Of a DNA stretch of 64,000 nucleotides, positions 3,183 through 63,796 are shown in pieces. The notes beneath the pieces were generated by a model. The model did no database searches. It saw only the letters and a program-made list of their open reading frames with translations, and had not been told where the DNA came from. This stretch comes from Octopus sinensis (lineage: Eukaryota). The stretch is from contig NC_043024.1 in the NCBI RefSeq assembly GCF_006345805.1, forward strand, positions 2,294,001 through 2,358,000. Direction: 5' to 3'. Numbering within the stretch: the stretch's first letter is position 1; each line of letters opens with the position of its first letter. The translations under genes and the position numbers were made by a program.

Positions 3183-3623
3183 TAAGAGCAGCTTTTCGAG
3201 TATGATCGTTACCAGCGTCGCCTTACTGGCACTTGTGCCTCGTGCTAGTAGGGTGCCAAGAGCACCATCCAAGCATGATCGTTATCAGCATCGCCTTACT
3301 GACACTTGTTCCGGTGGCACGTGAACAAAATATTCAAGCGAGGTCGTTGCCAGTGCCGCTGGACTGACTCCTGTGCAGGTGGCACATAAAAATCACCATT
3401 TCGAGCGTGGCCGTTGCCAGTACCACCAGACTGGCCCTCATGCCAATGGCACATAAAAGCACCCAGTACACTCTCAGAGTGGTTGGCATTAGGAAGGGCA
3501 TCCAGCTGTAGAAACTCAGCCAGATCAGATTGGAGCCTGGTGCAGCCATCTGGTTTGCCAGTCCTCAGTCAAATCGTCCAATCCATGCCAGTATGGAAAG
3601 CGGACGTTAAACGATGATGATGA
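3183..3623 (+). mobile_element. Family D retroposon with internal GTGCC..GGCAC modules
   Basis: Modular body plus conserved 3' block and ATG tail. Confidence 0.85.
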
Positions 3624-4438: not shown

Positions 4439-4604
4439 TATATATATAAAATGGAAATAGTCAAAGGGCAAATCCACCTGGTTCATGAACCTTTAGTCTT
4501 CAAAGCAGCCATATCAGGCCCAAATATTCTACCTGTTTTATGATCAAACTGGCTTGATCTGGGCTCTCACACCTACCTTGCAATATCATTCTAAAAACAT
4601 ATGT

Positions 4605-5000
4605 AGGCGTAGGAGTGGCTGTGTGGTAAGTAGCTTGCTTACCAGCCTCACGGTTCCGGGTTCAGTCCCACTGTATGGCACCTTGGGTAAGTGTCTTATA
4701 CTATAGCCTCGGACCGACCAAAGCCTTGTGAGTGGATTTCGTAGACAGAAACTGAAAGAAGCCCGTCGTATATATGTATATATATATATGTATGCGTGTG
4801 TGTGTTTCTCCCCCTCGCATTGCTTGACAACCGATGCTGGTGTGTTTATGTCCCCGTTACTTAACGGTTCGGCAAAAGAGACCGATAAAATAAGTACTAG
4901 GCTTACAAAAGAATAAGTCCCGGGGTCGAGTTGCTCGACTAAAGGCAGTGCAGCAGCATGGCCGCAGTCAAATGACTGAAACAAGTAAAAGAGTAAAGAG
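4605..5000 (+). mobile_element. tRNA-derived SINE (local family A, CORE-like CCTTGGGCAAG block)
   Basis: A-box-like GGCTGTGTGGTAAG, B-box-like GGTTCAGTCCC, (TA/TG)n middle, GTAAAAGAG tail. Confidence 0.85.
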
Positions 5001-5159
5001 AGTAGATAAGTAAGAACGGTATTGCTGTGAGAAAAACAGATTGTTTAGATTCACAGATTTCTTCCTTTTGTGGGACTTTCAGTCGTGCAATTTCAAGGCA
5101 AACAGATTAATACAGATTAAACAAATAGAATCCTATAAAATTATTGAGCGCTGTGTTAT

Positions 5160-5165
5160 TTTATT
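5160..5165 (-). terminator. Candidate polyadenylation signal (AATAAA) of the GCLC-like gene
   Basis: First canonical AATAAA found on the minus strand downstream of the stop at 5738; use not demonstrated. Confidence 0.4.
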
Positions 5166-5369
5166 TGTACACTGACCTAGCAATTTCTGTGTCTATCTGC
5201 CTCTCTATGTATCTGAATATCTGTTTCTATCTATATCCGTCCGTCCATCTGTCCAGCTATCTGTCTATCTACACATAAAGTTAATCCAAACAAGAAAGCA
5301 CAAAAAAACACAACAACGCGAGGACGTGGAACAAATATAGTATTATTGGACGCTCAGGAAAGAAGGAGG

Positions 5370-5404
5370 GTTTAACGTTTCGAGCGGAGCTCTTCGTCGG
5401 AAAC
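5370..5404 (-). ncRNA. Putative minimal type I hammerhead ribozyme, copy 1 (core variant CCGACGA)
   Basis: Minus strand GUUU-CCGACGA-A-GAGC(UCC)GCUC-GAA-ACGU-U-AAAC: stem I GUUU/AAAC, stem II GAGC/GCUC, palindromic stem III ACGU. Confidence 0.55.
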
Positions 5405-5533
5405 ATAGGAGAAGGAAAGACAGGAAAAAAAATCACCAATGGTACACACACGGTCACATCCAAACATGAAAACACAACAACGCGAGAACGTGGAACAAAT
5501 ATAGTATTATTGGACGCTCAGGAAAGAAGGGGG

Positions 5534-5568
5534 ATTTAACGTTTCGAGCGGAGCTCTTCATCGGAAAC
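5534..5568 (-). ncRNA. Putative minimal type I hammerhead ribozyme, copy 2 (core variant CCGAUGA)
   Basis: Minus strand GUUU-CCGAUGA-A-GAGC(UCC)GCUC-GAA-ACGU-U-AAAU; same fold with terminal G-U pair in stem I. Confidence 0.55.
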
Positions 5569-5737
5569 ACAGGAGAAGGGAAGACAGAGGGGAAAAAAAT
5601 CGTCAACGGTACACACGAGGTCAAACACACATATTTCTTGTTTCGCTATAAAATTATTTCGGTTATGTAGATTATATTTTCTGTATAATTAATTAAGTAA
5701 ATTAATTAAACACAAGACAAAGTCGTTGGAATATTTC

Positions 5738-5904
5738 TTATCCCTTGATAAATACTTGTGGACATCCTTCTTCATTGTTGATAATCTTTTCACATTCCAT
5801 CATAAAATCATAAGCGATTCTCTCGCTGACAACAGAATCATTCTTGTAATCGTCATGGTTTCTAACAAACTGCCTTGTCCATTGGGCCATTGTCATTATC
5901 TTTC
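5738..5904 (-). CDS. GCLC: GCLC-like, terminal coding exon
   Basis: Acceptor TTTTCCAG, phase 1; (G)KIMTMAQWTRQFVRNHDDYKNDSVVSERIAYDFMMECEKI...IKG*, aligns with GCLC ELMTVARWMREFIANHPDYKQDSVITDEMNY. Confidence 0.9.
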
Positions 5905-6181
5905 CTGGAAAATAAATTAAAATAAGCAATGGTTTCAGAAATATTAAATTTCTAAATCTCTCATAGAGATATGTACGGTGGTGGAGCGATAGAATGGTTG
6001 TATACTGTCAATCTAACGTGAACATGACAGTAGGGGGTTACACCACCGCTGTTTAACCCTAGGAAGCATCGACGCTTCCTGATGGCTTTGACACATTTTT
6101 CCTGTGTCCTTATATACATTTACGAAGGGGAGACAAACACCCCCAGCAGCCAGGCCTGCATTATATGGAAATTATTTGCTG

Positions 6182-6500
6182 TCATCACCATCATCATTGT
6201 TTAACGCCCACTTTCCATGCTGGCATGGGTTGGACGATTTGACTGAGGACTGGCGAACCAGACGGCTGCACCAGGCTCCAGTCTGATCTGGCAGAGTTTC
6301 TACAGCTGGATGCCCTTCCTAATGCCAACCACTCTGAGAGTGTAGTGGGTGCTTTTACGTGCCACCGGCATGAGGGCCAGTCAAGCGGTACTGGCAACAG
6401 CTACACTCAAATGGTGCTTTTTATGTGCCACCTGCACAGGAGCCAGTCCAGCGGCACTGGCAACGACCTCGCTTGAATATTTTTTTATGTGCCAGTAAGG
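6182..6500 (-). mobile_element. Family D retroposon
   Basis: CATCATCAT tail, then reverse complement of conserved body. Confidence 0.85.
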
Positions 6501-7025: not shown

Positions 7026-7140
7026 TTAACAATAAGGGTTACTGAGATAAAATATAGCTTAACATTATATTTTGTAATTGAAAAAGAAACTAGCATTATT
7101 GGGGATTTAATGTTGTATATTTTAAATAACATTTATTTAT

Positions 7141-7530
7141 AGGCGCAGGAGTGGCTGTGTGGTAAGTAGCTTGTTTACCAACCACATGGTTCCGGGTTCA
7201 GTCCCACTGCGTGGCACCTTGGGCAAGTGTCTTCTACTATAGTCCCGGGCCGACCAAAGCCTTGTGAGTGGATTTGGTAGACGGAAACTGAAAGAAGCCC
7301 ATCGTATATATGTATATATATGTGTGTGTGTTTGTGTGTCTGTGTTTGTCCCCCTAGCATTGCTTGACAACCGATGCTGGTGTGTTTATGTCCCCGTTAC
7401 TTAGCAGTTCGGCAAAAGAGACCTGGGCTTACAAAAGAATAAATCCCGGGGTCGAGTTGTTCGATTAAAGGCAGTGCTCCAGCATGGCCGCAGTCAAATG
7501 ACTGAAACAAGTAAAAGAGCAAAAGAGAGT
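7141..7530 (+). mobile_element. Family A SINE (GCLC-like intron)
   Basis: Full head GGCGCAGGAGTGGCTGTGTGG to GTAAAAGAG tail. Confidence 0.88.
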
Positions 7531-7555
7531 GAGGAAAACAAATGAATCATTTTAC

Positions 7556-7673
7556 CTGCAGCTTTGTCTGAGATATATTTCAGGTACTGCGTTATCTGAG
7601 GTCTGCCATTGGCATCGTAGTCAATATAATCAAGATATTTGTGTATGAGAGGAATGAAACCAGGGAAATCGTC
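7556..7673 (-). CDS. GCLC: GCLC-like exon (118 nt)
   Basis: CCAACAG|...GCAG|GTAAA; DDFPGFIPLIHKYLDYIDYDANGRPQITQYLKYISDKAA(G), matches GCLC FPGLIP..YL....D...R..I..YL..I...A.G; phases 0/1 fit neighbours. Confidence 0.92.
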
Positions 7674-7969
7674 CTGTTGGGAATAGAGTCAAAATGATTA
7701 AAAATAGGAGTGTTGTAGTTTGCTAGAAGCATTGTAGTATAGAAGAATAGTAAATGAAAAGGAAATGAGGAAAGCTTCTAACGATGCAGAGATAAAAGAT
7801 GAAAAAAAAGTGACATTTATATTTTGGGCACAAATGCCTGTCTTCAGAAGGTTACAGTCAAAGAAATGTTTGTTGAATGCAGATCCTGCCATTTGGGGCT
7901 GCCAGGTGGGCAGTGACCCCCATTTTAGTTTGGTACTTGCGCTTGTAGCAGCACACACATTTCTTTGAC

Positions 7970-8312
7970 CTGCGTCGCCCTACTGGCACTTGTTCCGGTG
8001 CCACGTGAACAAAACATTTGAGCGAGGCCGTTGCCAGTGCTGCTTGACTGGCTCCTGTGCAGGTGGCACGTAAAAAACCCCATTTGAGCATGGCCGTTGC
8101 TAGTACCACCAGTTTGGCCCTCGTGCCGGTGGCACGTAAAAAGCACCCACTACACTCTCGGAGTGGTTGGCATTAGGAAGGGCATCCAGCTGTAGAAACT
8201 CTGCCAGATCAGATTGTAGCCTGGTGCAGCCATCTGGTGTGCCAATCCTCAGTCAAAATCGTCCAACCCATGCCAGCATGGAAAACGGATGTTAAATAAT
8301 GATGATGATGAT
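7970..8312 (+). mobile_element. Family D retroposon
   Basis: Modular body plus ATG tail. Confidence 0.85.
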
Positions 8313-8608
8313 GTATCCTTCCGAAGACAGATCTTTGCACTCAAAATATAACCTTTTAGCTTTCTGATTACTCAGTCAAAATTAATGCTAATTTATTCAC
8401 ATTGTTTTTAATTAATCATGAATTATCTGACTAATTCTTACTGACACAAACAATTACCATTTACTTCAGAATCTGAATTTTACCCAATTCATTTTAAACC
8501 TAATGGAAGTTTAAAATTGATATAAAAACTAGACATCTGTTTCTTTTGAATTTTAGAATTTAGAATCTAAAATAACTGTTTTAGAATTTATTAAAAATAT
8601 TTTTTTAC

Positions 8609-8679
8609 CTTTCCGTTCATAATGTCGTTTATAGTCATCAAGGTGTAAATATCATCAGTGAGTTCACAGCCAGCAAAGT
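8609..8679 (-). CDS. GCLC: GCLC-like exon (71 nt)
   Basis: TTTAG|..AAG|GTAAA; (D)FAGCELTDDIYTLMTINDIMNGK vs GCLC YTLMSIDTIINGK. Confidence 0.9.
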
Positions 8680-9099
8680 CTAAATGACACGAAACAATTA
8701 TAGATTTATAATGTCAAAATATTCGGTTGGTTGATAAAACAAAAATATTTATTTATCATCATAAAAAACCAAAAAAAACAGAAAAGTGCTATTTGTGCGA
8801 GTGAATCAGTTTGTGTGTATTGGCGATGACGTTTGTTCAATGCCATAACTAAAGTTGAGTAGTGTAATTTCCTGCAACTACTTGTATAAATATAGCCAAT
8901 GTGTCTGTCAAAGAAAAGGCACCAAAGACAAAATCATTAATGACATTTCGATATGTTTTTATCCCCAAATGATTAGGTTGTTTATAACAACTTTGACTGT
9001 CAGACCAGAAATTGATAAAGACAAGTTCTTGGTTAGTTTAATCAAAGTTAAAATTAATTTCTTGTTATTCTTAAAATTTCTAAGAAATTTAATACTTAC

Positions 9100-9181
9100 C
9101 TTTGTGAATATCTTTCTTGAAGTAAAACTTTTCTTTATTGATGGCATCACGCTTTTGAGCAATTGAAATGTTTTCCTCAAC
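9100..9181 (-). CDS. GCLC: GCLC-like exon (82 nt)
   Basis: CCAAG|..AAAG|GTAAGT; VEENISIAQKRDAINKEKFYFKKDIHK vs GCLC VDENMKVAQKRDAVLQGMFYFRKDICK. Confidence 0.92.
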
Positions 9182-9229
9182 CTTGGAGAGAGCGAAATGA
9201 TAAGGAATCAACAAATATTTTTATTATAC

Positions 9230-9495
9230 ATCATCATCATCGTTTAACGTCCGTTTTCCATGCTATCATGGGTTGGACGGTTTGACTGTGGGCTGGCAAA
9301 CCAGATGGCTGCATCAGGCTCCAATCTGATCTGGCAGAGTTTCCACAGCTGAATGCCCTTCCTAACGCCAACCACTCCAAGAGTGTAGTGGGTGCTTTTA
9401 CGTGCCATCGGCATGGGGGCCAGTCAGGCGGTACTGGCAACGACCTCTCTTGTATTTTTTACACATGCCAATGGCACAGGTGCCAGTAAGGCGAT
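9230..9495 (-). mobile_element. Family D retroposon (followed by family A 3' fragment at ~9535-9660)
   Basis: CATCATC tail and conserved body. Confidence 0.8.
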
Positions 9496-9837
9496 AGCAA
9501 ATAATTCAGGAAAAAATATTTGCAAAGAAATTATTCTTTTACTCTTTTACTTGTTTCAGTCATTTGACTGTGGCCATGCTGGAGCACTGCCTTTAGTCGA
9601 AGAGATCGGCCCCAGGACTTATTCTTTGTAAGCCTAGTACTTATTCTATGGGCCTCTTTTGGAGAGAGTCAAGACTATTGAAAAGGTTGCAAGACACAAC
9701 GAAAATTTTAGGAAAATAAAAATAAGAAAAAAGTGGAAATTTTACTGGTGAGTGTATTACATTATAAGGGACAAAAAGAAAATGACTCTCCCCAGACACA
9801 ACAGTTCAATATTTATTTTAGAGAAATCAATATTTAC

Positions 9838-9942
9838 CTTTGTTATTGGGATCAAAAGGTCCAGTTTGAAAGTAACAATGGCTCGAGTGAGAAGAAGCAT
9901 GAACACAACAAGAGCAGCATTTTCAAAGTCGGTCAACTGAAG
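9838..9942 (-). CDS. GCLC: GCLC-like exon (105 nt)
   Basis: TTTCCAG|..AAG|GTAAAT; LQLTDFENAALVVFMLLLTRAIVTFKLDLLIPITK vs GCLC [35 protein letters not shown]. Confidence 0.95.
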
Positions 9943-10022
9943 CTGGAAATACAGAAAATGGTTATTAATGGTATTTCAAGACTTTCGAAAGTTGCAAGGC
10001 AAAGAAATATATAGTAATATTG

Positions 10023-10305
10023 ATATCATCATCATCATCATCATCATTATTTAGCGTCCGCTTTCCATGATAGCATGGGTTGGACGGTTCAACTGGGGTC
10101 TGGGAAGCCAGAAGGCTGCACCAGGCCCAGTCTGATCTGGCAGTGTTTCTACAGCTGGATGCCCTTCCTAACGCCAACCACTCCGTGAGTGTAGTGGATG
10201 CTTTTTACGTGCCACCGGCACAGGTGCCAGGCGAGGCTGGCAAACAGCCACGGTCAGATGGTGCTTTTTACGTGCCACCGGCACAGGGGCCAGGTGAGGC
10301 TGGCA
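10023..10305 (-). mobile_element. Family D retroposon
   Basis: (ATC)n tail plus body with duplicated module. Confidence 0.85.
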
Positions 10306-10659
10306 AATATATAAACATTTATTTATGGATATTTATTTATATTAATATCAGAGGTGACTCCAGGTCATCAGCGTTACTCAGGTTCATCAAAATTTCACAT
10401 AAGGCACTCAAAGAATTGCATGTTTTTCCGCTTTATTTCTAGCCTCAAATGGCTTATTTTTTATATCTAGCACTATGACTTTCTCCATTTCTAAATTAAG
10501 AGTAAAAATAAGGCAACCCTGTAAGAATATATCAAATTCCACTCAGAAATATCAATATTATGAGAAATACTTTTCCAAGGTGTCTCATAGTGAGATTGAA
10601 CTCAGAACCATGTTGATGTGAAGCCAACACCAAAAAGTGATGCCTGCACTTATATACCA

Positions 10660-11323
10660 TGTTTGTTCCTTCTCGAGCCATAAGGCTCATAAGGGCCAGT
10701 TTCCCGGTTTCCTTGGCGTATAGGTTCCCCACCTGGACAGGACGCCAGTCCGTCGCAGGTGAGCTGCAAGATGCAGGAGTAAAGAGTGAGAGAAAGTTGT
10801 GGCGAAAGAGTCAGCAGAAGTTTTGCCATTACCTTCTGCCGGAGCCGCGTGGAGCTTAGGTGTTTTCGCTCATAAACACACACATCACCTGGTCTGAGAT
10901 TCGAACCCGCGATCCCTGGACGGGACGCTGGTCCATCGCAGGTGAGCTGCAAGATGCAGGAGTAAAGAGTGAGAGAAAGTTGTGGCGAAAGAGTCAGCAG
11001 AAGTTCGCCATTACCTTCTGCCGGAGCCGCGTGGAGCTTAGGTGTTTTCGCTCATAAACACACACATCGCCTGGTCTGAGATTCGAACCCGCGATCCCTG
11101 GACGGGACGCTGGTCCATCGCAGGTGAGCTGCAAGATGCAGGAGGAAAGAGTGAGAGAAAGTTGTGGCGAAAGAGTCAGCAGAAGTTCGCCATTACCTTC
11201 TGCCGGAGCCGCGTGGAGCTTAGGTGTTTCGCTCATAAACACACACATCGCCCAATCTGAAATTCGAACCTGCGATCCCTCGACTGCGAGTCTGCTGCTC
11301 TAACCATCAGGCCATGTGCTTCC
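10660..11323 (-). mobile_element. tRNA-derived SINE (local family C) with internal segment in three tandem copies
   Basis: Head GGAAGCACATGGCCTGATGGTTAG..GGTTCGAATTTC; 182-183 bp unit repeated three times; single-unit copy at 38738-39046. Confidence 0.85.
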
Positions 11324-11384
11324 ACATATACAACGAAGTATACAGAGATATTTATTACGGAGACAGTTTCTAGTAAAATGTTAC

Positions 11385-11471
11385 CTCCATTGTTCTAAAT
11401 TCTATTTTCCATCCAGATATCTCATCGGGAAGTTTCAGTTTTATGCTGTGCCAATTACTGCCAATGATGGT
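11385..11471 (-). CDS. GCLC: GCLC-like exon (87 nt), most 5' exon found
   Basis: TTTTAG|..GAG|GTAAC; TIIGSNWHSIKLKLPDEISGWKIEFRTME vs GCLC [31 protein letters not shown]. Confidence 0.88.
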
Positions 11472-11915
11472 CTAAAACAGAAGGTTAAACAAGGTTCTTC
11501 ACTGATACGGAACATCTAAAACAATTCAATAATGAATATCATATTTATTCACATTTAATATGTACTTGTGTATTATGCATATCATTACTTGTAGGTTATG
11601 AAACCCAGAAGAAAATACGACCACTGTATAAAAACCACTAACTTTATTTAGTATCAAGATGTGTAGTAAAAGTGTTTAGTCAGTTTTACTGTAATTGCTG
11701 TGTAAAATACATTGAAAAGGGAACACATTGTAAAGAAAACAAAATTCAAATTTTTAAGTAACCTTTGACCTTTACCAGATTATACTGTAAAAGTGTATCT
11801 ACTGTGAAGATAACATTGTGAGAAAAAAATGAATTTTTCGGTCAATATTTTTTTTAAAATCGGGTTTTAATAAATTGAAACACAACCAGTTGAATTTTCA
11901 TCATCATTGTCATCA

Positions 11916-12015
11916 NNNNNNNNNNNNNNNNNNNNNNNNNNNNNNNNNNNNNNNNNNNNNNNNNNNNNNNNNNNNNNNNNNNNNNNNNNNNNNNNNNNNN
12001 NNNNNNNNNNNNNNN
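11916..12015. other. Assembly gap (100 N, probably unknown size)
   Basis: Exactly 100 N. Confidence 0.99.
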
Positions 12016-12089
12016 TAGATGGAAACCAAATTATGTCAAAGGTCAGATGAACAACAAGACACACAGCAGACATGAAGTAAATAGAAACC

Positions 12090-13069: not shown

Positions 13070-13590
13070 CGGGGAGGAGAGGGAGGGAAGTGAGAATGAG
13101 GGGAAGAGAGGGGAGAGATAGAAGGAGGAGGCGAGAGAAGAAAGAGTAGAAAGAAGGTGGAGAGGGAATGAAGAGGAGAGAGAAAAAGAGAAGAGAGAAG
13201 GAGGAGAGAGAGGAAAGAGGAGAGAGAAGAAAGAGGAGAAAGAAGGTGGAGAGGGAATGAAGAGGAGAGAGAAGAGAAGAGAGAAGAAAGAGGAGAGAGA
13301 AGGAGGAGGAGATGGGACAGAATTGAGAAAGGTGAGGGATGAGGGGGAAAGAGGAGAGAGGGGGAAGGAGAGATGGGAAGAGAGAGGAGAAGGGAAAGAG
13401 AGAGAAGAAGGGAGATAGAGGGGGTGAGGAGCAGAAGAGGGAGAGGGAGAGAGAGAGCAGGAGAAGAAAAAGTAAAGAAAGAGCTAGTAGTAGAGAGTTG
13501 AAATAATAGTGGAAAATATGAGGACAGAGAAGGAGAGAGAGAGGGAGGGAGGAGGAGGGAGTGGAGGAGGAGGGAGTGGAGGAGGAGGAA
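13070..13590. repeat. Purine-rich (GA/GGA) low-complexity tract
   Basis: Almost only G and A. Confidence 0.9.
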
Positions 13591-13639: not shown

Positions 13640-14330
13640 AGTGATGGTGGTGGTGGTCGTCGTCATTGTGGTGGTGGTGGTGGTGGTGGTCGTCGTCGTC
13701 ATTGTGGTGGTGGTGGTGGTGGTCGTCGTCGTCATTGTGGTGGTGGTGGTCGTCGTCGTCGTCATTGTGGTGGTGGTGGTGGTCGTCGTCGTAGTCATTG
13801 TGGTGGTGTGGTGGTGGTCGTCGTCATTGTGGTGGTGGTGGTCGTGTCGTCGTCATTGTGGTGGTGGTGGTCGTCGTCGTCGTCATGTGGTGGTGGTGGT
13901 GGTGTCGTGTCGTCATGAGGGTGGTGTGGTGGTGGTCGTCGTCGTCGTCATTGTGGTGGTGGTGGTGGTCGTCGTCGTCGTCGTCATCATTGTGGTGGTG
14001 GTGGTCGTCGTAGGATAGTGTGGTGGTGGTGGTGGTCGTCGTCGTCGTCATCATTGTGGTGGGTGGTGATGGTGGTGGTGGTGGTCGTCGTCGTCATCAT
14101 TGTGGTGGTCGTAGTGATGGTGGTGGTCGTCGTCGTCGTCATCGTCGTCATTGTGGTGGCGGTGGTGGTGCCGGTGCTGGTGCTGGTGCTGGTGCTGGTG
14201 GTGGTGATGATAGTGATGATGGTGGTGCTGGTGCAGGTGTTGGAGCTGTTGGTGGCGGCGGTGGCGGCGGCGGTGGCGGCGACGGTGGTGGAGAAGACAA
14301 TGAAGGTTGAAGGGTGCAGAGGAGGAGGTT
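13640..14330. repeat. Patterned (GTG)n/(GTC)n triplet microsatellite
   Basis: Alternating GTG and GTC runs punctuated by ATT; gives poly-Val/Trp/Gly/Thr ORFs. Confidence 0.9.
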
Positions 14331-15927: not shown

Positions 15928-16506
15928 GCGGTGAGCTGGCAGAAACGTTAGCATGTCGGGCGAAATACTTAGTGGTATTTCATCTGTCTTTATGTTCTGA
16001 GTTCAAATTCCGTCAAGGTCAACTTTGCCTTTCATCTTTCGGGGTCAATAAATTAAGTACCAGTTATGCACTGGGGTCGATGTAATCGATTTAATCCATT
16101 TATCTGTCCTTGTTTGTCCCATCTGTGTTTAGCCCCTTGTGGGTAGTAAAGAAATAGGCATTTCATCTGTCGTTATGTTCTGAGTTCAAATTTCGCCAAG
16201 GTTGACTTTGCCTTTCAACCTTTCGGGGTCGATTAAATAAGTACCAGTTACACACTGGGGATGATATAATCGACTTAATCCATTTGTCTGTCCTTGTTTG
16301 TCCCATCTGTGTTTAGCTCCTTGTGGGTAGTAAAGAAATAGGTATTTTGTCTGTCTTTGCGTTCTGAGTTCTAATTTCATTGAAGTCGACTTTGCCTTTC
16401 ATCCTTTCAGGTCAATAAACTAAGTACCAGTTGCACACTGGGGTTGATTTAATCGACTGGCCCCCCATCCCCAAAAATTTCAGGCCTTGTGCCTAGAGTA
16501 GAAAAG
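15928..16506 (+). mobile_element. SINE (local family B) with three tandem body modules and 20-bp TSD
   Basis: Head GCGGTGAGCTGGCAGAAAC, B-box-like GAGTTCAAATTCC; TSD AATTTGCTGTACTTGAGAAG at 15908-15927 and 16507-16526. Confidence 0.85.
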
Positions 16507-19070: not shown

Positions 19071-19499
19071 GAGAGTGATTAATATGAAAGTGGGAGTAAA
19101 AGCGGAGAAGCAAAATTCCCAGCAACTGTCCGTGGCTTCAAACGTTTCCAAATCGCTGTTTCCGAGATAATCTACGAATCTTGTAAAAGATAGTGCAAGG
19201 GAAATAACTCTTACTTAAGGATACAGGAGTTACGTACCTTACTTTTTAAAACCCGGTCGATATAGAATTTATAGTTATACATAAATATACGTGCATGCGT
19301 CTATGCTTAAATATAGATATGTATATATATAATATTGTATGTATGTATTTTATTAATTTGACTGTACGGCTGGTAATTCGCTCAGCACTTGTGATGGTAT
19401 TTCAATAATACCATCCCTAAATTTAATTATTTATGTGTATATATATATATATAAATTAAGTAGGAATGGATTAATTATAAATATTAAAAGCAATATCAT

Positions 19500-19969: not shown

Positions 19970-20680
19970 ATCAAATCAAAACAAATCAAAATAGATGAAC
20001 ATCAATGGAATTTGTATCTTTGTGGTACCAGTGCCGGTGGCACGTGGCACATAAGAAAACCATCCGAACGTGGCCGTAGCCAGTACCGCATCGACTGGCC
20101 TCCGTGCTGTGGGCACGTAACAAGCACCATCCGATCGTGGCCGTTTGCCAGCCTCATCTGGCACCTGTGTCGGTGGCACATAAAAACACCATCCGAGCGT
20201 GGCCGTCTGCCAGCCTCGTCTGGCACCTGTGTCGGTGGCACAAAAAAAAAACACCATCCGAGCGTGGCCGTCTGCCAGCCTCGTCTGGCACCTGTGTCGG
20301 TGGCACAAAAAAAAACACCATCCGAGCGTGGCCGTCTGCCAGCCTCGTCTGGCACCTGTGTCGGTGGCACAAAAAAAAACACCATCCGAGCGTGGCCGTT
20401 TGTCAGCCTCGTCTGGCACCTGTGTCGGTGGCACAAAAAAAAACACCATCCGAGCGTGGCCGTTTGTCAGCCTCGTCTGGCACCTGTGTCAGTGGCACAT
20501 AAAATCACCCACTACACTCTCGGAGTGGTTGGCGTTAGGAAGGGCATCCAGCTGTAGAAACACTGCCAGATCTGACTGGACTGGTGCAGCTTTCGGGCTC
20601 CCCAGACCCCAGTTGAACCGTCCAACCCATGCTAGCATGGAAAGCGGACGTTAAATGATGATGATGATGATGATGATGAT
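19970..20680 (+). mobile_element. Family D retroposon with six-copy 62-65 bp internal module array
   Basis: CCATCCGA recurs at about 20127, 20189, 20254, 20318, 20382 and 20446. Confidence 0.88.
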
Positions 20681-22279: not shown

Positions 22280-22879
22280 TCAGGTATGAGTACGTTTGTG
22301 CCGTGGTAAAGCACTGCTGTCAGAGAATGATTTACCACAGATATCACAGCGATGAGGTTTCTCCCCTGTATGAATGCGTTTGTGTCTTGATAAATCGTTT
22401 TGAGAGAATGATTTACCACAGATATCGCAGAGATACGGTTTTTCCCCCGTGTGTATACGTTTGTGTATTGTTAACTTACTTCCTTCTGAAAAGGATTTAC
22501 CGCAGATATCACAGTGATATGGTTTTTCCCCTGTATGTGTGTACTTGTGCCGAGTTAAGCTGCTTGTATGAGAAAACGATACACCACACACGTCACAAGA
22601 ATACGGCTTCTCGCCGGTATGAACAAGCATGTGTCGGGTCAAGTGGCCTTTTTGGGAAAACGATTCTCCACAGATGTCACAGTGATACGGCTTATCTCCT
22701 GTATGAATACGTACGTGCCTTCTCAAAGCATTACTTTTAGAGAATGATTTACCACAGACACCGCAGTGATATGACTTATCTCCTGTATGAATGAGTATGT
22801 GAGTTTTCAGGTTACATTTTTGTGAGAAAGACTTCTCACATATATCGCAGTTGTACGATTTTCCTGTCACTTTCGGCAT
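22280..22879 (-). CDS. C2H2 zinc-finger protein ZNF-1 (7 fingers, subfamily I)
   Basis: MPKVTGKS + 7x C-x2-C-x12-H-x3-H (finger 6 has x11) with TGEKP/TGDKP linkers; ends HT* where the linker Gly codon would be. Confidence 0.88.
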   Translation of the reverse strand: MPKVTGKSYNCDICEKSFSQKCNLKTHILIHTGDKSYHCGVCGKSFSKSNALRRHVRIHTGDKPYHCDICGESFSQKGHLTRHMLVHTGEKPYSCDVCGVSFSHTSSLTRHKYTHTGEKPYHCDICGKSFSEGSKLTIHKRIHTGEKPYLCDICGKSFSQNDLSRHKRIHTGEKPHRCDICGKSFSDSSALPRHKRTHT

Positions 22880-25967: not shown

Positions 25968-27176
25968 CAGTGCTTTTCAAACTTTTTGCTGGAGCGGAAC
26001 CCCAAGGAAACATTCCACTGGCTCGAGGAACCCCAAGGAAACATTCCACTGGCTCGAGGAACCCCAAGGAAACGTTCCACTGGCTCGAGGAACCCCAAGG
26101 AAACATTCCACTGGCTCGAGGAACCCCAAGGAAGCATTCCACTGGCTCGAGGAACCCCAAGGAAACATTCTACTGGCTCGAGGAACCCCAAGGAAACATT
26201 CCACTGGCTCGAGGAACCCCAAAGAAACATTCCACTGGCTCGAGGAACCCCAAGGAAACATTCCACTGGCTCGAGGAACCCCAAGGAAACATTCCACTGG
26301 CTCGAGGAACCCCAAGGAAACGTTCCACTGGCTCGAGGAACCCCAAGGAAACATTCCACTGGCTCGAGGAACCCCAAGGAAACATTCCACTGGCTCGAGG
26401 AACCCCAAGGAAACATTCTACTGGCTCGAGGAACCCCAAGGAAACATTCCACTGGCTCGAGGAACCCCAAAGAAACATTCCACTGGCTCGAGGAACCCCA
26501 AGGAAACATTCCACTGGCTCGAGGAACCCCAAGGAAACATTCCACTGGCTCGAGGAACCCCAAGGAAACATTCCACTGGCTCGAGGAACCCCAAGGAAAC
26601 GTTCCACTGGCTCGAGGAACCCCAAGGAAACATTCTACTGGCTCGAGGAACCCCAAGGAAACGTTCCACTGGCTCGAGGAACCCCAAGGAAGCATTCCAC
26701 TGGCTCGAGGAACCCCAAGGAAACATTCCACTGGCTCGAGGAACCCCAAGGAAGCGTTCCACTGGCTCGAGGAACCCCAAGGAAACATTCCACTGACTCG
26801 AGGAACCCCAAGGAAACATTCCACTGGATCGAGGAACCCCAAGGAAACATTCTACTGGCTCGAGGAACCCCAAGGAAACATTCCACTGGCTCGAGGAACC
26901 CCAAGGAAACATTCCACTGGCCCAAGGAACCCCAAGGAAACGTTCCACTGGCTCGAGGAACCCCAAGGAAACATTCCACTGGCCCGAGGAACCCCAAGGA
27001 AACATTCCACTGGCCCAAGGAACCCCAAGGAAACGTTCCACTGGCTCGAGGAACCCCTGTGCAATAATTTAATAGTCTTATGCACAAATATCTGCACAGG
27101 AGAATTAAAAATTACTGTCGATTTTAGCAGTTTTGTAACTTCTTGCGGAACCCCTGGACTGTACTGGTGGAACCCT
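25968..27176. mobile_element. hAT-type MITE expanded by an internal minisatellite, right TIR missing
   Basis: Left TIR CAGTGCTTTTCAAAC; flanks of the array match the reverse complement of the 202-bp MITE at 47640-47841. Confidence 0.85.
25996..27057. repeat. Minisatellite, 34 x 31 bp (GGAACCCCAAGGAAACATTCCACTGGCTCGA) plus 8-bp partial
   Basis: 1054 bp = 34 x 31; explains the overlapping 31-aa-periodic ORFs in all frames. Confidence 0.95.
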
Positions 27177-31520: not shown

Positions 31521-32453
31521 ATGACAGAAAATTCCTATAACTGTGATGTCTGTCACAAGTCGTTCTCTCAAAAATCTAATCTGAAAACTCACGTACTCAT
31601 TCATACTGGAGAGAAACCCTTTCGCTGTGATATCTGTGGTAAATCGTTTGCTGGGGGTAGTAACTTGACTAAACACAAACGTACACACACAGGAGAAAAA
31701 CCATATCAGTGTGATATCTGCGGAAAATCATTCTCCGTAAATCACAACTTGACTTCTCACAAACTCATTCACACGGGAGAGAAACCATATCACTGTGACA
31801 TCTGTGGTAAATCTTTCTCTCAAAACAGTCTCTTAACTTACCACAAACGCATTCATACGGGAGAGAGGGCTCATCGCTGTGATATCTGTGGTAAAATATT
31901 TTCTGAAAGTGGGGCTTTAACAAGACACAAACGTACTCATACAGGGGACAAACCATATGACTGTGATATCTGCGGTAGTGCTTTCTCTCAAAGTGATTTC
32001 TTGACAAGACACAAACGTATTCATACGGGTGAGAAACCATATCACTGCGATATCTGTGGTAAATCATTCTCTGAAAGTGGTGCTTTAACAAGACACAATC
32101 GCACTCATACCGGGGACAAACCGTATCACTGTGATGTCTGTGGTAGAACGTTCTCTCAAATAGATTTCTTAGTAAGACACAGACGCATTCATACAGGGGA
32201 GAAGCCATACCATTGTGATATTTGTGGTAAATTGTTTGCTGGGTGTAGCGATTTGACCAGACACAAACGCATTCATACCGGGGACAAACCATATCACTGT
32301 GATATCTGTGGTAAAGCAGTTGCTAGAAGCAGTGACTTGACCAGACATAAACGTACTCATACAGGAGAGAGGCCATATCACTGTGATATCTGTGGTAAAT
32401 ATTTCTCGCAAGCAGGAGGCTTATCCAGGCACAAATGCATTCACACAGGATAG
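31521..32453 (+). CDS. C2H2 zinc-finger protein ZNF-2 (11 fingers, subfamily I)
   Basis: MTENS + 11 canonical fingers; ends HTG* (TAG in place of the linker Glu codon). Confidence 0.92.
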   Translation: MTENSYNCDVCHKSFSQKSNLKTHVLIHTGEKPFRCDICGKSFAGGSNLTKHKRTHTGEKPYQCDICGKSFSVNHNLTSHKLIHTGEKPYHCDICGKSFSQNSLLTYHKRIHTGERAHRCDICGKIFSESGALTRHKRTHTGDKPYDCDICGSAFSQSDFLTRHKRIHTGEKPYHCDICGKSFSESGALTRHNRTHTGDKPYHCDVCGRTFSQIDFLVRHRRIHTGEKPYHCDICGKLFAGCSDLTRHKRIHTGDKPYHCDICGKAVARSSDLTRHKRTHTGERPYHCDICGKYFSQAGGLSRHKCIHTG

Positions 32454-36030: not shown

Positions 36031-36557
36031 TATTAATGTTTTGTGAAGTAATTATCTCTTGTTAAAGTAAACGTTGATAATTGTGGCTAAGATGAGAGAC
36101 CCTCCACGTGTTCCAGGATCGGTGGTACCCATTGCTTTCTTGATTAATATTTCATTTCATCACAAACTTTACATCGTTAATTAGTTCCCTAATTAACAGG
36201 AAGAAGATCAGTAATTAACTTATAACGACCAACAAATCATTCAACTTTTGCTGAGACACTTTTCATTTGGATTTCAAAGCGAAAACACAAATTATTTGGA
36301 TTGGCTCAACACATCACAAACCGTGGAGTTTTCTACTCACCAGCGTAAGCAACTGTCACTATTTAATTAGGATCTCTCACTAATTAACACAGTGTTAAAG
36401 AATGTATTGAAACCTACGAACCTGTTTGGTCGAATGTTAACTCGTTTTCTGTGATTCTTAGGAAACAAAGAATCCGTTACAGAGTTAACTATCCAGCTAC
36501 CGTTGTGCCATTTCGCATCGCTGCACTATTAAGCAACACACATACACACGCTTATTT

Positions 36558-36968
36558 CTTTACTACCCACAAGGGGCTAAACACAGAGAGGACAAACAAG
36601 GACAGACAAAGGGATTAAGTCGATTACATCGACCCCAGTGCGAAACTGGTACTTATTTAAACGACCCCGAAAGAATGAAAGGGAAAGTCGACCTCGGCGG
36701 AATTTGAACTCAGAAAGTAAAGACAGACGAAATACTTATTTCTTTACTACCCACAAGGGGCTAAACATAGAGGGGACAAACAAAGACAGACAAAGGGATT
36801 AAGTCGATTACATCGATCCCAGTGCGTAACTGGTACTTAATTTATCGACCTCGAAAGGATGAAAGGCAAAGTCGACCTCGGCGGAATTTGAACTCAGAGC
36901 GTAACGGCAGACGAAATACCGCTAAGCATTTCGCCCGGCGTGCTAATGTTTCTGCCAGCTCGCCGCCT
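36558..36968 (-). mobile_element. Family B SINE, two body modules, 15-bp TSD
   Basis: TSD TACACACGCTTATTT at 36543-36557 and 36969-36983. Confidence 0.88.
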
Positions 36969-37205: not shown

Positions 37206-38681
37206 ATGGAGGACTTTAAGGACTTCAATACATCTAACACAACTGTTTTTAACAATATAAATACAGTTAGGGACACAGAGAGAGATGAGAAATCTCTACA
37301 TGGGGAAACAGTTTCTAAACAAACGTTCCAGGTAAATATTACGAAATATAAATGTGATGTTTGTGGGAAACTTTGCTCTTCGGAACATGAGGTCTTCAAG
37401 CATAAAGAAATGCACAATCAGAAAAAACCGTATCAGTGTGAGATATGCGGAAAGTCCTTTGGGTGTAGGAGTCAGTTGAAAATACACAACAGATCCCATA
37501 CCGGAGAAAAACCGTATCCCTGTGAAATCTGTGGAAAAGCTTTTGGTTCCAAAAGTAATTTAACGCAACACGTAAAGACACACGCTGGGAAAAAACTCCA
37601 TCACTGCGAAATCTGCCGAAATACTTTTGTGTCGAGTACGAATTTGAAAATACACTATAGGATTCATACTGGGGAAAAACCCTTCCGCTGTGAAGTTTGC
37701 GGAAAATCCTTCGTGTCTAATATTCAGTTAAAAACACATAAACGGGTCCACACTGGAGAGAAACCTTATCACTGTGAGATATGTGGAAAAGCTTTTGTAA
37801 CCAGTTGTCACTTAAAGGAGCACAACCGGACCCATACAGGGGAGAAACCATATCAGTGTAAAATCTGTGGGAAAGCTTTTATATCCAGTAGTAAATTGAA
37901 ACTACACGACAGGGCCCATACTGGGCAGATACCCTACCACTGTGAAATATGTGGAAAAGCTTTTATGTGTAGTAGTAAGTTGAAAATACACCACAGGACC
38001 CATTCTGGGGAAAGGCCCTTTTGTTGTGAAATATGCGGCAGGTCTTTCTCTAACAACGCCAATCTTGTTGGACACAAACGAACCCACACCGGGGAAAAGG
38101 CGTTTCTCTGCATGATTTGCGGGAAGTCTTTTAGCTTGAATTATTCTTTAAAAAGACACAGAACCACCCATACTGGAGAAAAACCATTTGCCTGTGAGAC
38201 ATGCGGAATGTCTTTTAGTTTGAAGAATTCTTTGAAAAGACACCAAAGGACTCATTCTGGGGAAAAACTCAGTCATTGTGAAATCTGTAACAAATATTTC
38301 TCCAATAATTTCAATCTTTCTGTTCATAAGCGAATCCACGGAGGAGTGAAGACTTGTTACTGTGAAATATGTGGTAAAAGTTTCTTTCATAAATCTTATC
38401 TTTCTGCTCACAAAAGGACGCATGTTGGAGGGAAATCCTTTAAGTGTAACGTCTGCGGGAAATCTTTCTCCAGTAATAATGTCTTGTCACAACACAAAAA
38501 AATCCATTCTGGAGAAAAACTGTGTTGCGATATATGTGGGAAATCTTTTTCTTATAATTCAAATCTAAAAGTCCACAGACGAACGCATTCCGGAGAAAGG
38601 ATGCATCCTTGCGAAACATGTGGGGAATCTTTTACCAGAAGTGATGGCTTAAAGGAACATGTGGCAATGCACACTGCATGA
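37206..38681 (+). CDS. C2H2 zinc-finger protein ZNF-3 (16 fingers, subfamily II)
   Basis: 47-aa leader ending NITKY, 16 fingers, start context TTAACATGGA. Confidence 0.93.
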   Translation: MEDFKDFNTSNTTVFNNINTVRDTERDEKSLHGETVSKQTFQVNITKYKCDVCGKLCSSEHEVFKHKEMHNQKKPYQCEICGKSFGCRSQLKIHNRSHTGEKPYPCEICGKAFGSKSNLTQHVKTHAGKKLHHCEICRNTFVSSTNLKIHYRIHTGEKPFRCEVCGKSFVSNIQLKTHKRVHTGEKPYHCEICGKAFVTSCHLKEHNRTHTGEKPYQCKICGKAFISSSKLKLHDRAHTGQIPYHCEICGKAFMCSSKLKIHHRTHSGERPFCCEICGRSFSNNANLVGHKRTHTGEKAFLCMICGKSFSLNYSLKRHRTTHTGEKPFACETCGMSFSLKNSLKRHQRTHSGEKLSHCEICNKYFSNNFNLSVHKRIHGGVKTCYCEICGKSFFHKSYLSAHKRTHVGGKSFKCNVCGKSFSSNNVLSQHKKIHSGEKLCCDICGKSFSYNSNLKVHRRTHSGERMHPCETCGESFTRSDGLKEHVAMHTA

Positions 38682-41933: not shown

Positions 41934-42896
41934 TCATAGCATTATGGTGTCTATCTCTATATGAACACGTCTGTGTTTAGCTAAATCACCGCTACGTGAG
42001 AATGATATCCCACAAATGTCACACTGATATGGTTTCTCTCCTGTGTGAATGCGTTTGTGTTTGGTTAAGACAGCTCCATCAGAGAATGATTTACCACAGA
42101 TATCACAGGTATAAGGTTTGTCACCTGTGTGACTACGTATGTGTTTGGTTAATTTACTTCCTTCTGAGAATGCTTTGCCACAGACATCACAGCAAAATGG
42201 TTTCTCACCTGTGTGGATATACCTGTGAGCAGATAAGTGGCTGTTTTGAGAGAATGATTTACCACAGGTATCGCAGTGATATGGTTTCTCACCTGTATGC
42301 GTGTACTTGTGTGTAGTTAGGCTACCTGTCTGAGAGAAAGATTTACCACAGATATCACAGCGATATGGTTTGTCACCTGTATGAATATATTTGTGTATAG
42401 TTAAATTACCAGTATGAGAGAATGATTTACCACAGATATCGCAATGATATGGTTTATCACCTGTATGAATGCGTCTGTGTCTCGTTAGCGTACCTGTCTG
42501 TGAGAATGATTTACCACAGGTGTCACAGTGATATGGTTTCTCACCTGTATGAATACGTTTATGTTTTGCTAAGGTATCATTTTGAGAGAATAATTTTCCA
42601 CAGATATCACAGTGATATGGTTTCTCACCTGTATGAATATATTTGTGTGTAGTCAAGCTACCTGTGTGAGAGAATGATTTATCACAGATATCACAACGAA
42701 AAGGTTTATCACCTGTGTGACTACGTTTGTGTGCAGTTAAACCACCTGTCTGTGAGAATGACTTACCACAGATATCACAGCGAAATGGCTTCTCACCTGT
42801 ATGAATGCATTTGTGTGTCTTGAGGTTACATTTTTGAGAGAAAGACTTTTTACAGATATCACAGTCGTATGAGGATTTTCCTGTCACTTTCGGCAT
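41934..42896 (-). CDS. C2H2 zinc-finger protein ZNF-4 (11 fingers, subfamily I)
   Basis: MPKVTGKSS + 11 fingers; N-terminus nearly identical to ZNF-1. Confidence 0.92.
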
Positions 42897-43382: not shown

Positions 43383-43843
43383 CTGAAAGAAAAGAGGAAC
43401 AGAATAAAAGAGAGAGGTTACTTAATAAGTTGAGATACAGCAGAGAAATTCTTCTCTATTTCTAAACTCATAAACTGTAGATCTACTCCTTCAGGTGAAC
43501 AAACGAACTTAACCAATATATTCTTCCATTTACAAGACTGAAAGGGGTATATGTACAAGGGGATGTAAAAATGTTCCTGGCTTTGGTTAAAAGAAAATAC
43601 AGGAGGGTCAGGGAATTATGATATTCCACTCTCTGATACATATACTCATCATCGTTTTTCGTTCTCTCCATTCTTTTTCCCCCTCTTAATCCTTTCTGCC
43701 GAAAAGTGTAACCTCGAAATATAAATACGATGGGCTTCTTTCAGTTTCCGTCAACTAAATCCACTCACAAGGATTTGGTCGACCCGAGGCTATGATAGAA
43801 GACACTTGCCCGGGATGGCACTCGGTGGAACTGAATACACAAA

Positions 43844-44839: not shown

Positions 44840-45581
44840 CACGCACAGACATACATACATAGGAAAAGGAAAGATCCAAGGAAGGGAAGACGGAGGGAAA
44901 AAATTGCCAACGGTACACATGCGGTTGCATTTTGAATGTGTATATATATACACATACACACACACACACACAAACATACATACATGTAAACATATACACA
45001 CAGATCTGTGATTGTGTGTGTGTGTATATATATATACAAATTATTTTATGTTTATTAAAGACGAAAGTGATTTCTTCTTTCGGAGATGTCAGGCCATTCC
45101 AAGCGTAATACGAAATCAAAACAAAGAAATCCATTCACACGACATGTATACAATATAAGTGTTTATATAAACGAAATACTTACATATTAGTATAAAGAAC
45201 TAGAGAGGGAAATGTGAGGATACGTTGAAGGGGTCTGGACTTCTTAAATCAGACTGGACATTAACAGGTTCGAGAGAATTTCTAGGTTTTTATAGCAAAA
45301 GTTGATGTAGATCAACGTAATAATGAATGCTGTATCTTCTTTCTTTACACAGTTAATTGCCGATCATGTAAATTTAATTGGATCGCGTTGAATACCAGTT
45401 GTGAAGTGGAACTGATCAAGTAATGTAGATGTGAATGAAACAATTGAAGGAAATTAATTGGGAAGATTTAGCAATTAGCAGACGAAGGGAAATAACTCTA
45501 CTTTTGACAGCGGTCTTTAAATAGGTCCCGAGGCATTTAATACGGTTAAGGGTTACCCGAGGCACTTAATACAGTTAGGGG

Positions 45582-52163: not shown

Positions 52164-52565
52164 TCCACAAGGGGCTAAACACAGAGGGGACAAACAAGGA
52201 CAAACAAACGGATTAAGTCGATTACATTGACCCCAGTGCGTAACTGGTACTTATTAAATCGACCTCGAAAGGATGAAAGGCAAAGTTGACCTCGGTGGAA
52301 TTTGAACTCAGAACGTAACAGCAGACGAAATACCTATTTCTTTACTACCCACAAGGGGCTAAACACAGAGAGGACAAACAAGGACAGACAAAAGGATTAA
52401 CTCGATTACATCGACCCCAGAGCGTAACTGGTACTTAATTTATCGATCCCGAAAGGATGAAGGGCAAAGTCGACCTCGGCGGAATTTGAACTCAGAACGT
52501 AACAGTAGACGAAATAGCACTAAGCATTTCGCCAGGCGTGCTAACCTTTCTGCCAGCTCGCCGCC
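52164..52565 (-). mobile_element. Family B SINE, two modules
   Basis: Reverse-complement head at 52565. Confidence 0.85.
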
Positions 52566-63682: not shown

Positions 63683-63796
63683 GTTAATCCAAACCGGATT
63701 ATCTAAACGTGGTAGAAATGTCAATTACTATAATCTCTTATGTGTCAGTTTCATGTCTCAGTTGCTGTGCTTTAGTTGTTTATTAATTATAATTAC

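Follow-up and report, generated by a model that had tools for sequence, protein, structure and literature searches.

A two-unit repeat beyond the GCLC stop codon of Octopus sinensis: probably a dimer of a small mobile element with a Penelope-type hammerhead-like motif

When two ribozyme-like motifs lie side by side just past the end of a gene, do they belong to the gene, or to something that landed there? The question is raised by a 64,000-nucleotide stretch of the Octopus sinensis genome (contig NC_043024.1, positions 2,294,001 to 2,358,000; hereafter "the window", in whose coordinates positions are given unless another locus is named). A tandem repeat with a period of 164 bp lies there behind the last coding exon of GCLC, the gene for the glutamate-cysteine ligase catalytic subunit, and within each repeat unit, in sense orientation to GCLC, stands a short sequence resembling a minimal hammerhead ribozyme. 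In our view the repeat probably consists of two head-to-tail copies of a small mobile Octopus element with a Penelope-type hammerhead-like motif, and this motif is probably a crippled passenger at GCLC; effects on the GCLC messenger RNA (mRNA) are unlikely. The features on which the argument first depends are these:

5280 to 5634, minus strand: head-to-tail dimer of a putative non-autonomous element of about 165-190 nt, with unit A at 5463-5634 and unit B at 5280-5467 (Tandem Repeats Finder, nhmmer, alignments).
5534 to 5568, minus strand: motif of unit A, GUUU CCGAUGA A GAGC UCC GCUC GAA ACGU U AAAU, with C4, a bulged A and U as H17; predicted scissile bond 5538/5537 (descriptor match, one core mismatch).
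5370 to 5404, minus strand: motif of unit B, GUUU CCGACGA A GAGC UCC GCUC GAA ACGU U AAAC; predicted scissile bond 5374/5373 (descriptor match, one core mismatch).

An earlier note on this DNA had described a 164-bp two-copy repeat, and this is borne out: Tandem Repeats Finder places it at 5305-5623 with a period of 164, 1.9 copies and 90% matches, and a MAFFT alignment of the two units gives 92% column identity. The nhmmer family profile matches the minus strand twice (E 5e-52 and 9e-52), with unit A spanning 5463-5634 and unit B 5288-5467, and unit B reaches as far as 5280, ending ...TTTGGATTAAC, a 3' end found identically in a copy from O. vulgaris. The dimer is bordered by ATATGTGTGT upstream and by a degenerate TATG/GATA microsatellite downstream. 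Its G+C content is 44.8%, and the RNA of the two units is 66% pyrimidine.

Both motifs have the order of a type I hammerhead, in which helices I and II flank the core. Helix I has 4 bp (three A-U pairs plus a G-C or a G.U) and helix II also has 4 bp in both copies; a bulged A stands between A9 and helix II in all copies, and all full copies have GAA-ACGU-U, in which ACGU is self-complementary. The two motifs of the window differ only at N7 and at position 1.4 (G.U versus G-C), both tolerated changes, and their predicted scissile bonds are exactly 164 nt apart. The architecture and bases are thus as the earlier note had read them, except that the fourth pair of helix I in copy A is a G.U wobble and not a G-C pair. 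The likeness to Penelope-type minimal hammerheads that it proposed also holds against the published motifs (PMC4209133), in the short helix I, the bulged nucleotide 5' of helix II and the palindromic ACGU. Compared with the invariant hammerhead core (C3 U4 G5 A6 N7 G8 A9 ... G12 A13 A14 A15.1 ... U16.1 H17), the window copies depart by having C4, while the rest of the core matches.

How often would such a motif turn up by accident? Our descriptor asked for two helices, I and II, each with 4 bp or more, for the stretches CUGANGA and GAAA, for an optional bulge of 1 nt, and for a palindromic insert of 0, 2 or 4 nt, U16.1 and a non-G H17; its relaxed form allowed one substitution at any of 11 core positions, and the background consisted of random first-order Markov sequences. 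With the strict core there is no match in the window (0.005 expected per 64 kb), and a complete type I hammerhead in at least two consecutive units, by which a 2026 preprint (10.64898/2026.07.22.740005) defines its "active" class, is absent. The relaxed descriptor finds these two sites only in 128 kb (the window on both strands), with 0.097 expected per 64 kb. The chance of a one-mismatch match in one pre-specified 164-nt unit is about 2.5e-4, and that of a match inside any of the non-coding tandem arrays with a period of 100-500, which make up about 3% of the window, is about 0.003. The motif is unlikely to be due to chance.

Relatives of the element were sought in three 22-kb loci, L002 from O. 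bimaculoides, L003 from O. sinensis and L004 from O. vulgaris, reached via a zinc-finger protein of O. bimaculoides (P0063) and the orthologues of this protein in the other two species. (The zinc-finger open reading frame, used as a protein query, matched mostly vertebrate proteins, and P0063 was the useful match.) Including the window, the comparison rests on four loci and on five hammerhead-bearing copies at these four loci. The O. vulgaris copy (L004 22236-22427, minus strand, incomplete because the locus ends within it) belongs to the same subfamily as the dimer (nhmmer E 1e-38) and is 96.8% identical to unit A and 98.6% identical to unit B. Its motif reads GUUU CCGACGA A GAGC UCC GCUC GAA ACGU U AAAG, again with C4, and its helix I has 3 pairs, the fourth being a G.G mismatch. 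In O. bimaculoides the orthologous site (L002, about 19200-19290) holds just a (CA)n(TA)n tract.

The O. bimaculoides copy (L002 17736-17942, minus strand, nhmmer E 2e-41) stands alone between (TA)n tracts as an entire unit of about 200 nt, and its motif, AGUCUUU CUGUUGA A GAGC GUA GCUC GAA ACGU U AAAGACU, has U4 but U6 and defines a second subfamily. Its helix I is 7 bp long, with C-G at 2.4-1.4 where the window has G-C or G.U; all three bases of loop 2 are changed relative to the window motif, while helix II and GAAACGU are the same. Here too the orthologous sites are bare (TA)n, both in O. sinensis (L003, about 20060-20100) and in O. vulgaris (L004, about 19190-19260). One flank of the O. 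bimaculoides copy is hidden by a gap of Ns. The window itself holds two further relatives:

44881 to 44929, minus strand: partial copy of the first subfamily, the 5' part only, ending ...CCTATGT just before the hammerhead block and lying within (TG)n/(TA)n (blastn 85% over 47 nt, E 5e-9; nhmmer E 0.001).
About 43640 to 43730, plus strand: strongly decayed copy resembling the second subfamily, a weak match read by eye (nhmmer E 0.3), with CUUU CUGCCGA A ... CGAA AUAU A AAU at 43690-43725 and a short interspersed nuclear element (SINE) directly after it.

The decayed copy has C6, and its AUAU is also palindromic. All element copies adjoin microsatellites of the TA/TG type. Solo copies in O. vulgaris and O. 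bimaculoides, each with an empty site in the other lineage, together with the partial copies of the window, are what one expects of a dispersed family, and the family consists of short elements in at least two subfamilies, each with insertions that are absent from the other octopus lineage. Insertions whose orthologous site is empty in the other lineage point to a recently mobile element, which would be non-autonomous, about 170-200 nt long and of the Penelope/retrozyme kind. Two family-specific patterns gave 0 matches in metagenome and viral contigs, and protein searches with the GCLC C-terminal exon and with the spurious reading frames across the repeat gave no matches to further family copies.

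Within the element, the 35-nt hammerhead block is what is best conserved between the subfamilies (28/35, or 80%, versus 55-60% in the flanks), and the seven or eight differences that it does contain fall in loop 2, at N7, in one compensating pair of helix I and at two core positions. When seven or eight random substitutions are placed in the block, the descriptor survives in 5e-4 to 1e-4 of the trials, a figure that is biased by the fact that the relatives were found by similarity. When the register is slid as a control, the share of cells that pair falls from 87% (register 0) to 17-49%. The G-to-C change at 2.4, moreover, keeps helix I of the hammerhead and disrupts a competing GUUUC/GAAAC hairpin.

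The departures from the core follow the subfamilies as well. C4 is present in all three copies of the first subfamily, at two loci and in two species; the earlier note had drawn attention to C4 in both copies of the repeat, and this caveat turns out to reach wider than it was stated, since the whole subfamily shares it, O. vulgaris included. That C4 is a mutation private to this decayed locus is therefore ruled out, the O. vulgaris copy having the same C4 at 97-99% identity. In the second subfamily both copies have a pyrimidine at position 6 (U6 in O. bimaculoides, C6 in the relic at 43.7 kb). Position 1.4 of the first subfamily may be U, C or G, and helix I is therefore limited to three or four weak pairs.

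When the dimer is compared with the O. vulgaris copy and with the 44.9-kb fragment, both of its units turn out to have the same two deletions, one in the CT-rich region upstream of the motif and the other in the CCTTCTTT repeat downstream of it, besides substitutions private to each unit; units A and B therefore derive from one source. The alignment fits a dimeric template or a tandem insertion, and it also fits a later local duplication. Dimeric templates and tandem insertions are typical of Penelope-like elements and retrozymes (PMC8557442; PMC7229834). As a separate observation, the window contains four SINE-like tandem arrays (10732-11284, 15977-16458, 36551-36919 and 52165-52516) with a period of 182-184 bp, 1.9-3.0 copies and 86-95% matches, all free of the hammerhead-like motif, and tandems of two or three copies of elements of about 180 bp seem to be common in this genome.

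Where, then, does the dimer stand with respect to the gene? The features of GCLC are as follows:

5738 to 5904, minus strand: last coding exon of GCLC, with acceptor AG at 5906-5905 and stop codon TAA at 5740-5738 (Pfam, PDB, tblastn).
7545 to 11477, minus strand: five further GCLC exons, at about 11477-11376, 9957-9832, 9214-9098, 8704-8546 and 7667-7545 (tblastn).
5160 to 5165, minus strand: first canonical AATAAA after the GCLC stop, 573 nt downstream of it (hexamer scan).
5342 to 5678, minus strand: variant hexamers before this AATAAA, namely AATATA at 5678-5673 and AATAAT at 5658-5653, 5511-5506 and 5347-5342 (hexamer scan).

The last exon matches profile positions 332-372 (of 372) in the Pfam family PF03074 (GCS) with E 9e-15, and it also matches the glutamate-cysteine ligase of yeast (3ig5) with E 7e-6, so the exon is real and the sense orientation of the motifs to a GCLC-like gene, as first noted, stands. 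Both motifs lie 170-368 nt past the stop and upstream of the AATAAA at 5165-5160, in agreement with the 170-370 nt given before. The sequence places the dimer probably within the GCLC 3' untranslated region (UTR) and hence in the mRNA; the mature mRNA may or may not include the repeat, because AATATA (60 nt past the stop) and AATAAT (80, 227 and 391 nt past it) precede AATAAA.

The upstream exons were mapped by tblastn with an approximate human GCLC sequence that served as a probe only, and the exon at 9.9 kb also matches Pfam GCS (E 1.3e-11). With this probe, tblastn found no exons for about the first 400 GCLC residues within the 64-kb window. The exons end at about 11.4 kb, a run of about 100 Ns lies at about 11.9 kb (region 11376-12070), and the remaining 52 kb are without the missing exons, a pattern that points to a gap or misjoin in the assembly, or else to a gene that is split or partial. 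A cluster of C2H2 zinc-finger open reading frames, on both strands, lies immediately upstream of these 3' exons of GCLC (22280-22879, 31521-32453, 37206-38681, 41934-42896, 49775-51214, 54519-55601 and 62627-63724). The frame at 37206-38681 maps to the O. sinensis assembly GCA_006345805.1, chromosome record CM016886.1.

Other repeats surround the dimer. Many belong to two abundant families of SINE-like units, which betray themselves by pseudo-peptides that keep recurring, among them FDCGHAGALPL... and TLSEWLALGRASSCRN...; copies lie at 4586-4984, 7137-7370 and 9392-9631 and at 1984-2181, 3334-3617, 6194-6397, 7858-8146 and 9237-9440; one SINE-like copy begins about 300 nt downstream of the 164-bp repeat, inside or just past the likely 3' UTR. 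Farther away, a 31-bp unit is repeated about 34 times at 25996-27057 with 95% identity, producing spurious reading frames of up to 424 aa on both strands, and a GTG/GTC trinucleotide array of about 218 copies at 13641-14291, with an adjoining GA-rich array at 13115-13360, gives low-complexity reading frames.

The scenario that we favour would be the following. A small, pyrimidine-rich, non-autonomous retroelement, recently mobile in Octopus and presumably mobilised by machinery of the Penelope type, would insert into microsatellites of the TA/TG type. Each unit would bring along a minimal type I hammerhead-like motif, read in the same direction as GCLC and of the sort known from Penelope-like elements and animal non-LTR (long terminal repeat) retrozymes. 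The motif would have no helix III hairpin, and the palindromic ACGU alone could pair between two copies. It would have arrived with the element rather than having been shaped by GCLC, and the core C in place of the invariant U4, together with three or four weak helix I pairs, would make it a passenger lying about 100 nt past the GCLC stop.

Several observations weigh against this reading, and we prefer to set them out together. The canonical CUGANGA core is found in none of the five hammerhead-bearing copies at the four loci. A canonical (CUGAYGA) ancestor is therefore something that we assume from the hammerhead model, and not an observed sequence; deriving such an ancestor by parsimony had to be rejected, because three unrooted lineages cannot root positions 4 and 6. 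It is in this sense that we infer the descent of the motif from a canonical hammerhead. The Rfam hammerhead models (Hammerhead_1, _3, _II, HH9, HH10) have no match at gathering score in the whole window, and at E<=10 no hammerhead family matches 5150-5750, 5360-5420 or L002 17730-17960 (61-600 nt), a miss that is to be expected because the motifs have no helix III hairpin.

The evidence from conservation has its own limits, in that the apparent conservation is inflated by the way in which the relatives were found, by similarity, and that covariation amounts to one compensatory pair (G-C, G.U or C-G at 2.4-1.4) in three sequences, a result that 161 of 500 shuffles also reach and that is not significant. 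Folding does not come to the aid of the motif either. For the window copies, the minimum-free-energy fold beats the hammerhead fold by 2-3 kcal/mol, RNAfold preferring the competing GUUUC/GAAAC hairpin, and the two-unit RNA folds no better than its shuffles (z = -0.25; short segments z = -0.2 to -1.0); a stable rod-like RNA is ruled out by the former value. Since hammerhead-free elements of about 182-184 bp are also found in tandem, the tandem state is not diagnostic of a retrozyme or of a rolling-circle origin. Finally, no reverse transcriptase or GIY-YIG reading frame was found within several kb of the array, although degenerate remnants may escape such a search; the open reading frames of at least 140 aa in the window are zinc fingers, low-complexity sequences or frames without an assigned identity.

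Among the alternatives, the one that survives best is that the unit is a terminal piece (pseudo-LTR or 3' tail) of an autonomous Penelope-like element, present here as a heavily 5'-truncated insertion in partial tandem. Penelope-like insertions are typically 5'-truncated partial tandems, with a hammerhead near the 3' end and a preference for microsatellites (PMC8557442; preprint 10.64898/2026.07.22.740005), and unit B and the O. vulgaris copy do share the 3' end ...GTTTGGATTAAC beside TATG/TA repeats. The 5' ends tell a different story: four copies begin at one and the same point (GTGTGTAC...) instead of showing scattered truncations, and the O. bimaculoides copy is a complete unit with (TA)n on both sides. 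The failure to find a reverse transcriptase or GIY-YIG frame moreover extends to all four sampled loci. We consider this explanation unlikely.

The likeness to a hammerhead could also be a coincidence, the element being some other short interspersed repeat with a conserved GAGC-loop-GCUC hairpin and the tandem an ordinary local duplication. Much of what was said above can be turned to its advantage: every sampled core departs from the consensus, Rfam is without a match, the covariation is statistically weak, and other short elements of the window also occur in tandems of two or three copies; in addition, about 9% of random 64-kb windows hold at least one one-mismatch match. This last figure concerns any position in a window, and it has to be set against the far smaller chance for one given 164-nt unit. 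The second subfamily, in turn, fits the descriptor despite seven or eight differences that include loop 2, N7 and the compensating helix I pair (p about 5e-4 to 1e-4), and the G-to-C change preserves helix I at the expense of the competing hairpin. The bulged A and the ACGU palindrome match the published Penelope-type motifs (PMC4209133), and ARAGORN finds no tRNA-like head in 4500-6500, by which a tRNA-derived SINE is ruled out. Coincidence thus appears to us quite improbable.

What the C4 subfamily does is another matter. Having been mobile recently, this subfamily either can spread without cleavage or has a C4 that is tolerated in vivo. One could imagine that the octopus family spreads with cores that break the "invariant" positions (C4; a pyrimidine at 6), either because such cores are tolerated in vivo, in which case the GCLC dimer would cleave itself and shed a 164-nt RNA, or because the fold serves as a non-catalytic structure recognised by reverse transcriptase, but we would give this idea very little credence.

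The activity to be expected of the pair can be judged by analogy. In the minimal hammerheads of Penelope, helix I measures 4-5 bp, one base at the 5' end of helix II is left unpaired and helix III is a small palindrome; they act as dimers (PMC4209133), a mode of action established for hammerheads whose helix III is short (PMC4209133; PMC7229834). Even the canonical ones are poor cleavers in vitro, the monomers showing no cleavage and the dimers and trimers a low activity, mostly at unphysiological Mg2+ (PMC4209133). The U4C change considerably lowers the activity of hammerheads in vitro, and yet enough was retained in vivo for a viroid with U4C to stay infectious; a natural C6 variant has low yet detectable activity (PMC3088659). 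In the window, the intermolecular helix III would have 4 bp only, between sites 164 nt apart. Efficient self-cleavage is unlikely on these comparisons, and with C4 and three or four weak pairs in helix I, the pair is most likely a very slow or inactive ribozyme.

Least credible of all, we think, is the proposal that the two C4 hammerheads pair via ACGU and cleave the GCLC 3' UTR in cis, destabilising the mRNA or releasing a circularising 164-nt RNA: two sense copies exactly 164 nt apart with a self-complementary ACGU, the infectious U4C viroid and the recent mobility of the C4 subfamily (C4 must work if mobility needs cleavage) speak for it, but the U4C loss of activity in vitro, the poor cleavage of even canonical relatives, a helix I of three or four mostly A-U pairs (three in the O. 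vulgaris copy, with its G.G mismatch), the impossibility of loop-loop tertiary contacts, a helix III of 4 bp spanning 164 nt while the competing hairpin is favoured, and the proliferation of hammerhead-less Penelope clades, from which mobility does not imply cleavage (PMC8557442), all speak against it.

Returning to the dimer as a small mobile element, how does it compare with known systems? The minimal hammerheads of Penelope-like elements (Cervera & de la Pena 2014, PMC4209133; above all the variants of Drosophila virilis, rotifer, shrimp and mosquito, in which helix III is small and palindromic) resemble it in their type I topology, in a short helix I (4-5 bp there, 3-4 bp in the first octopus subfamily and 7 bp in the second), in lacking a helix III hairpin and having only A15.1-CG-U16.1, or ACGU, to pair between two copies, in tandem and solo copies, and in microsatellite targets; a preference for such targets and for tandem insertions is known for Penelope-like elements (PMC8557442). 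They differ in having a helix II of 6-8 bp, where the octopus motif has 4 bp with a 3-nt loop, in having CUGANGA, where the octopus has C4 (first subfamily) or a pyrimidine at 6 (sister subfamily), and in lying within the terminal repeats of an element that codes for reverse transcriptase and GIY-YIG endonuclease, whereas no such frame adjoins the octopus repeat.

Animal retrozymes are tandem repeats of 150-450 bp with low G+C (PMC7229834), and exonic retrozymes tend to sit in 3' UTRs (preprint 10.64898/2026.07.22.740005). The non-LTR retrozymes of animals (Cervera & de la Pena 2020, PMC7229834; Li, Clavereau & Pollet 2026, preprint 10.64898/2026.07.22.740005) share with the octopus element the head-to-tail units of 150-450 bp, the low G+C (45% in the octopus), one type I motif per unit, the occurrence as monomers and dimers, and a place in the last exon or 3' UTR when genic. 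Invertebrate retrozymes are, however, usually canonical and efficient, with loop-loop contacts, whereas the octopus core is non-canonical and its RNA pyrimidine-rich, with no unusual folding stability. In the retrozyme and hammerhead literature that we checked, we found no mention of octopus retrozymes.

A third comparison is offered by natural core variants of hammerheads (the U4C viroid and C6; Perreault et al. 2011, PMC3088659), in which, as here, a single substitution of U4 or A6 persists in an otherwise complete hammerhead of a replicating or mobile element. Those variants are stabilised by tertiary contacts and have been assayed, whereas the octopus motifs, whose low activity is a prediction, are of the minimal form and have no contacts to stabilise them. 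Taken together, the feature most probably descends from Penelope/retrozyme minimal hammerhead elements, while departing from them in the invariant core, in its miss by the Rfam models and in the lack of an adjacent Penelope frame. What appears to be new is a family, in a cephalopod, of short hammerhead-like elements in which the core substitutions differ from one subfamily to the other.

If this is true, it would add one more case of a hammerhead element of the Penelope/retrozyme type, this time in a cephalopod. The C4 subfamily, whose core change is expected to cripple catalysis, would still have been inserting around the split of O. vulgaris and O. sinensis. A subfamily that is crippled and yet mobile bears on the question, raised for Penelope-like elements, of whether hammerheads are needed for transposition at all (PMC8557442), hammerhead-less Penelope clades spreading well and cleavage being arguably dispensable. 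For GCLC, the motif that looks like a ribozyme in the 3' UTR is best explained as transposon cargo, which calls for caution before such a motif is read as a regulatory device.

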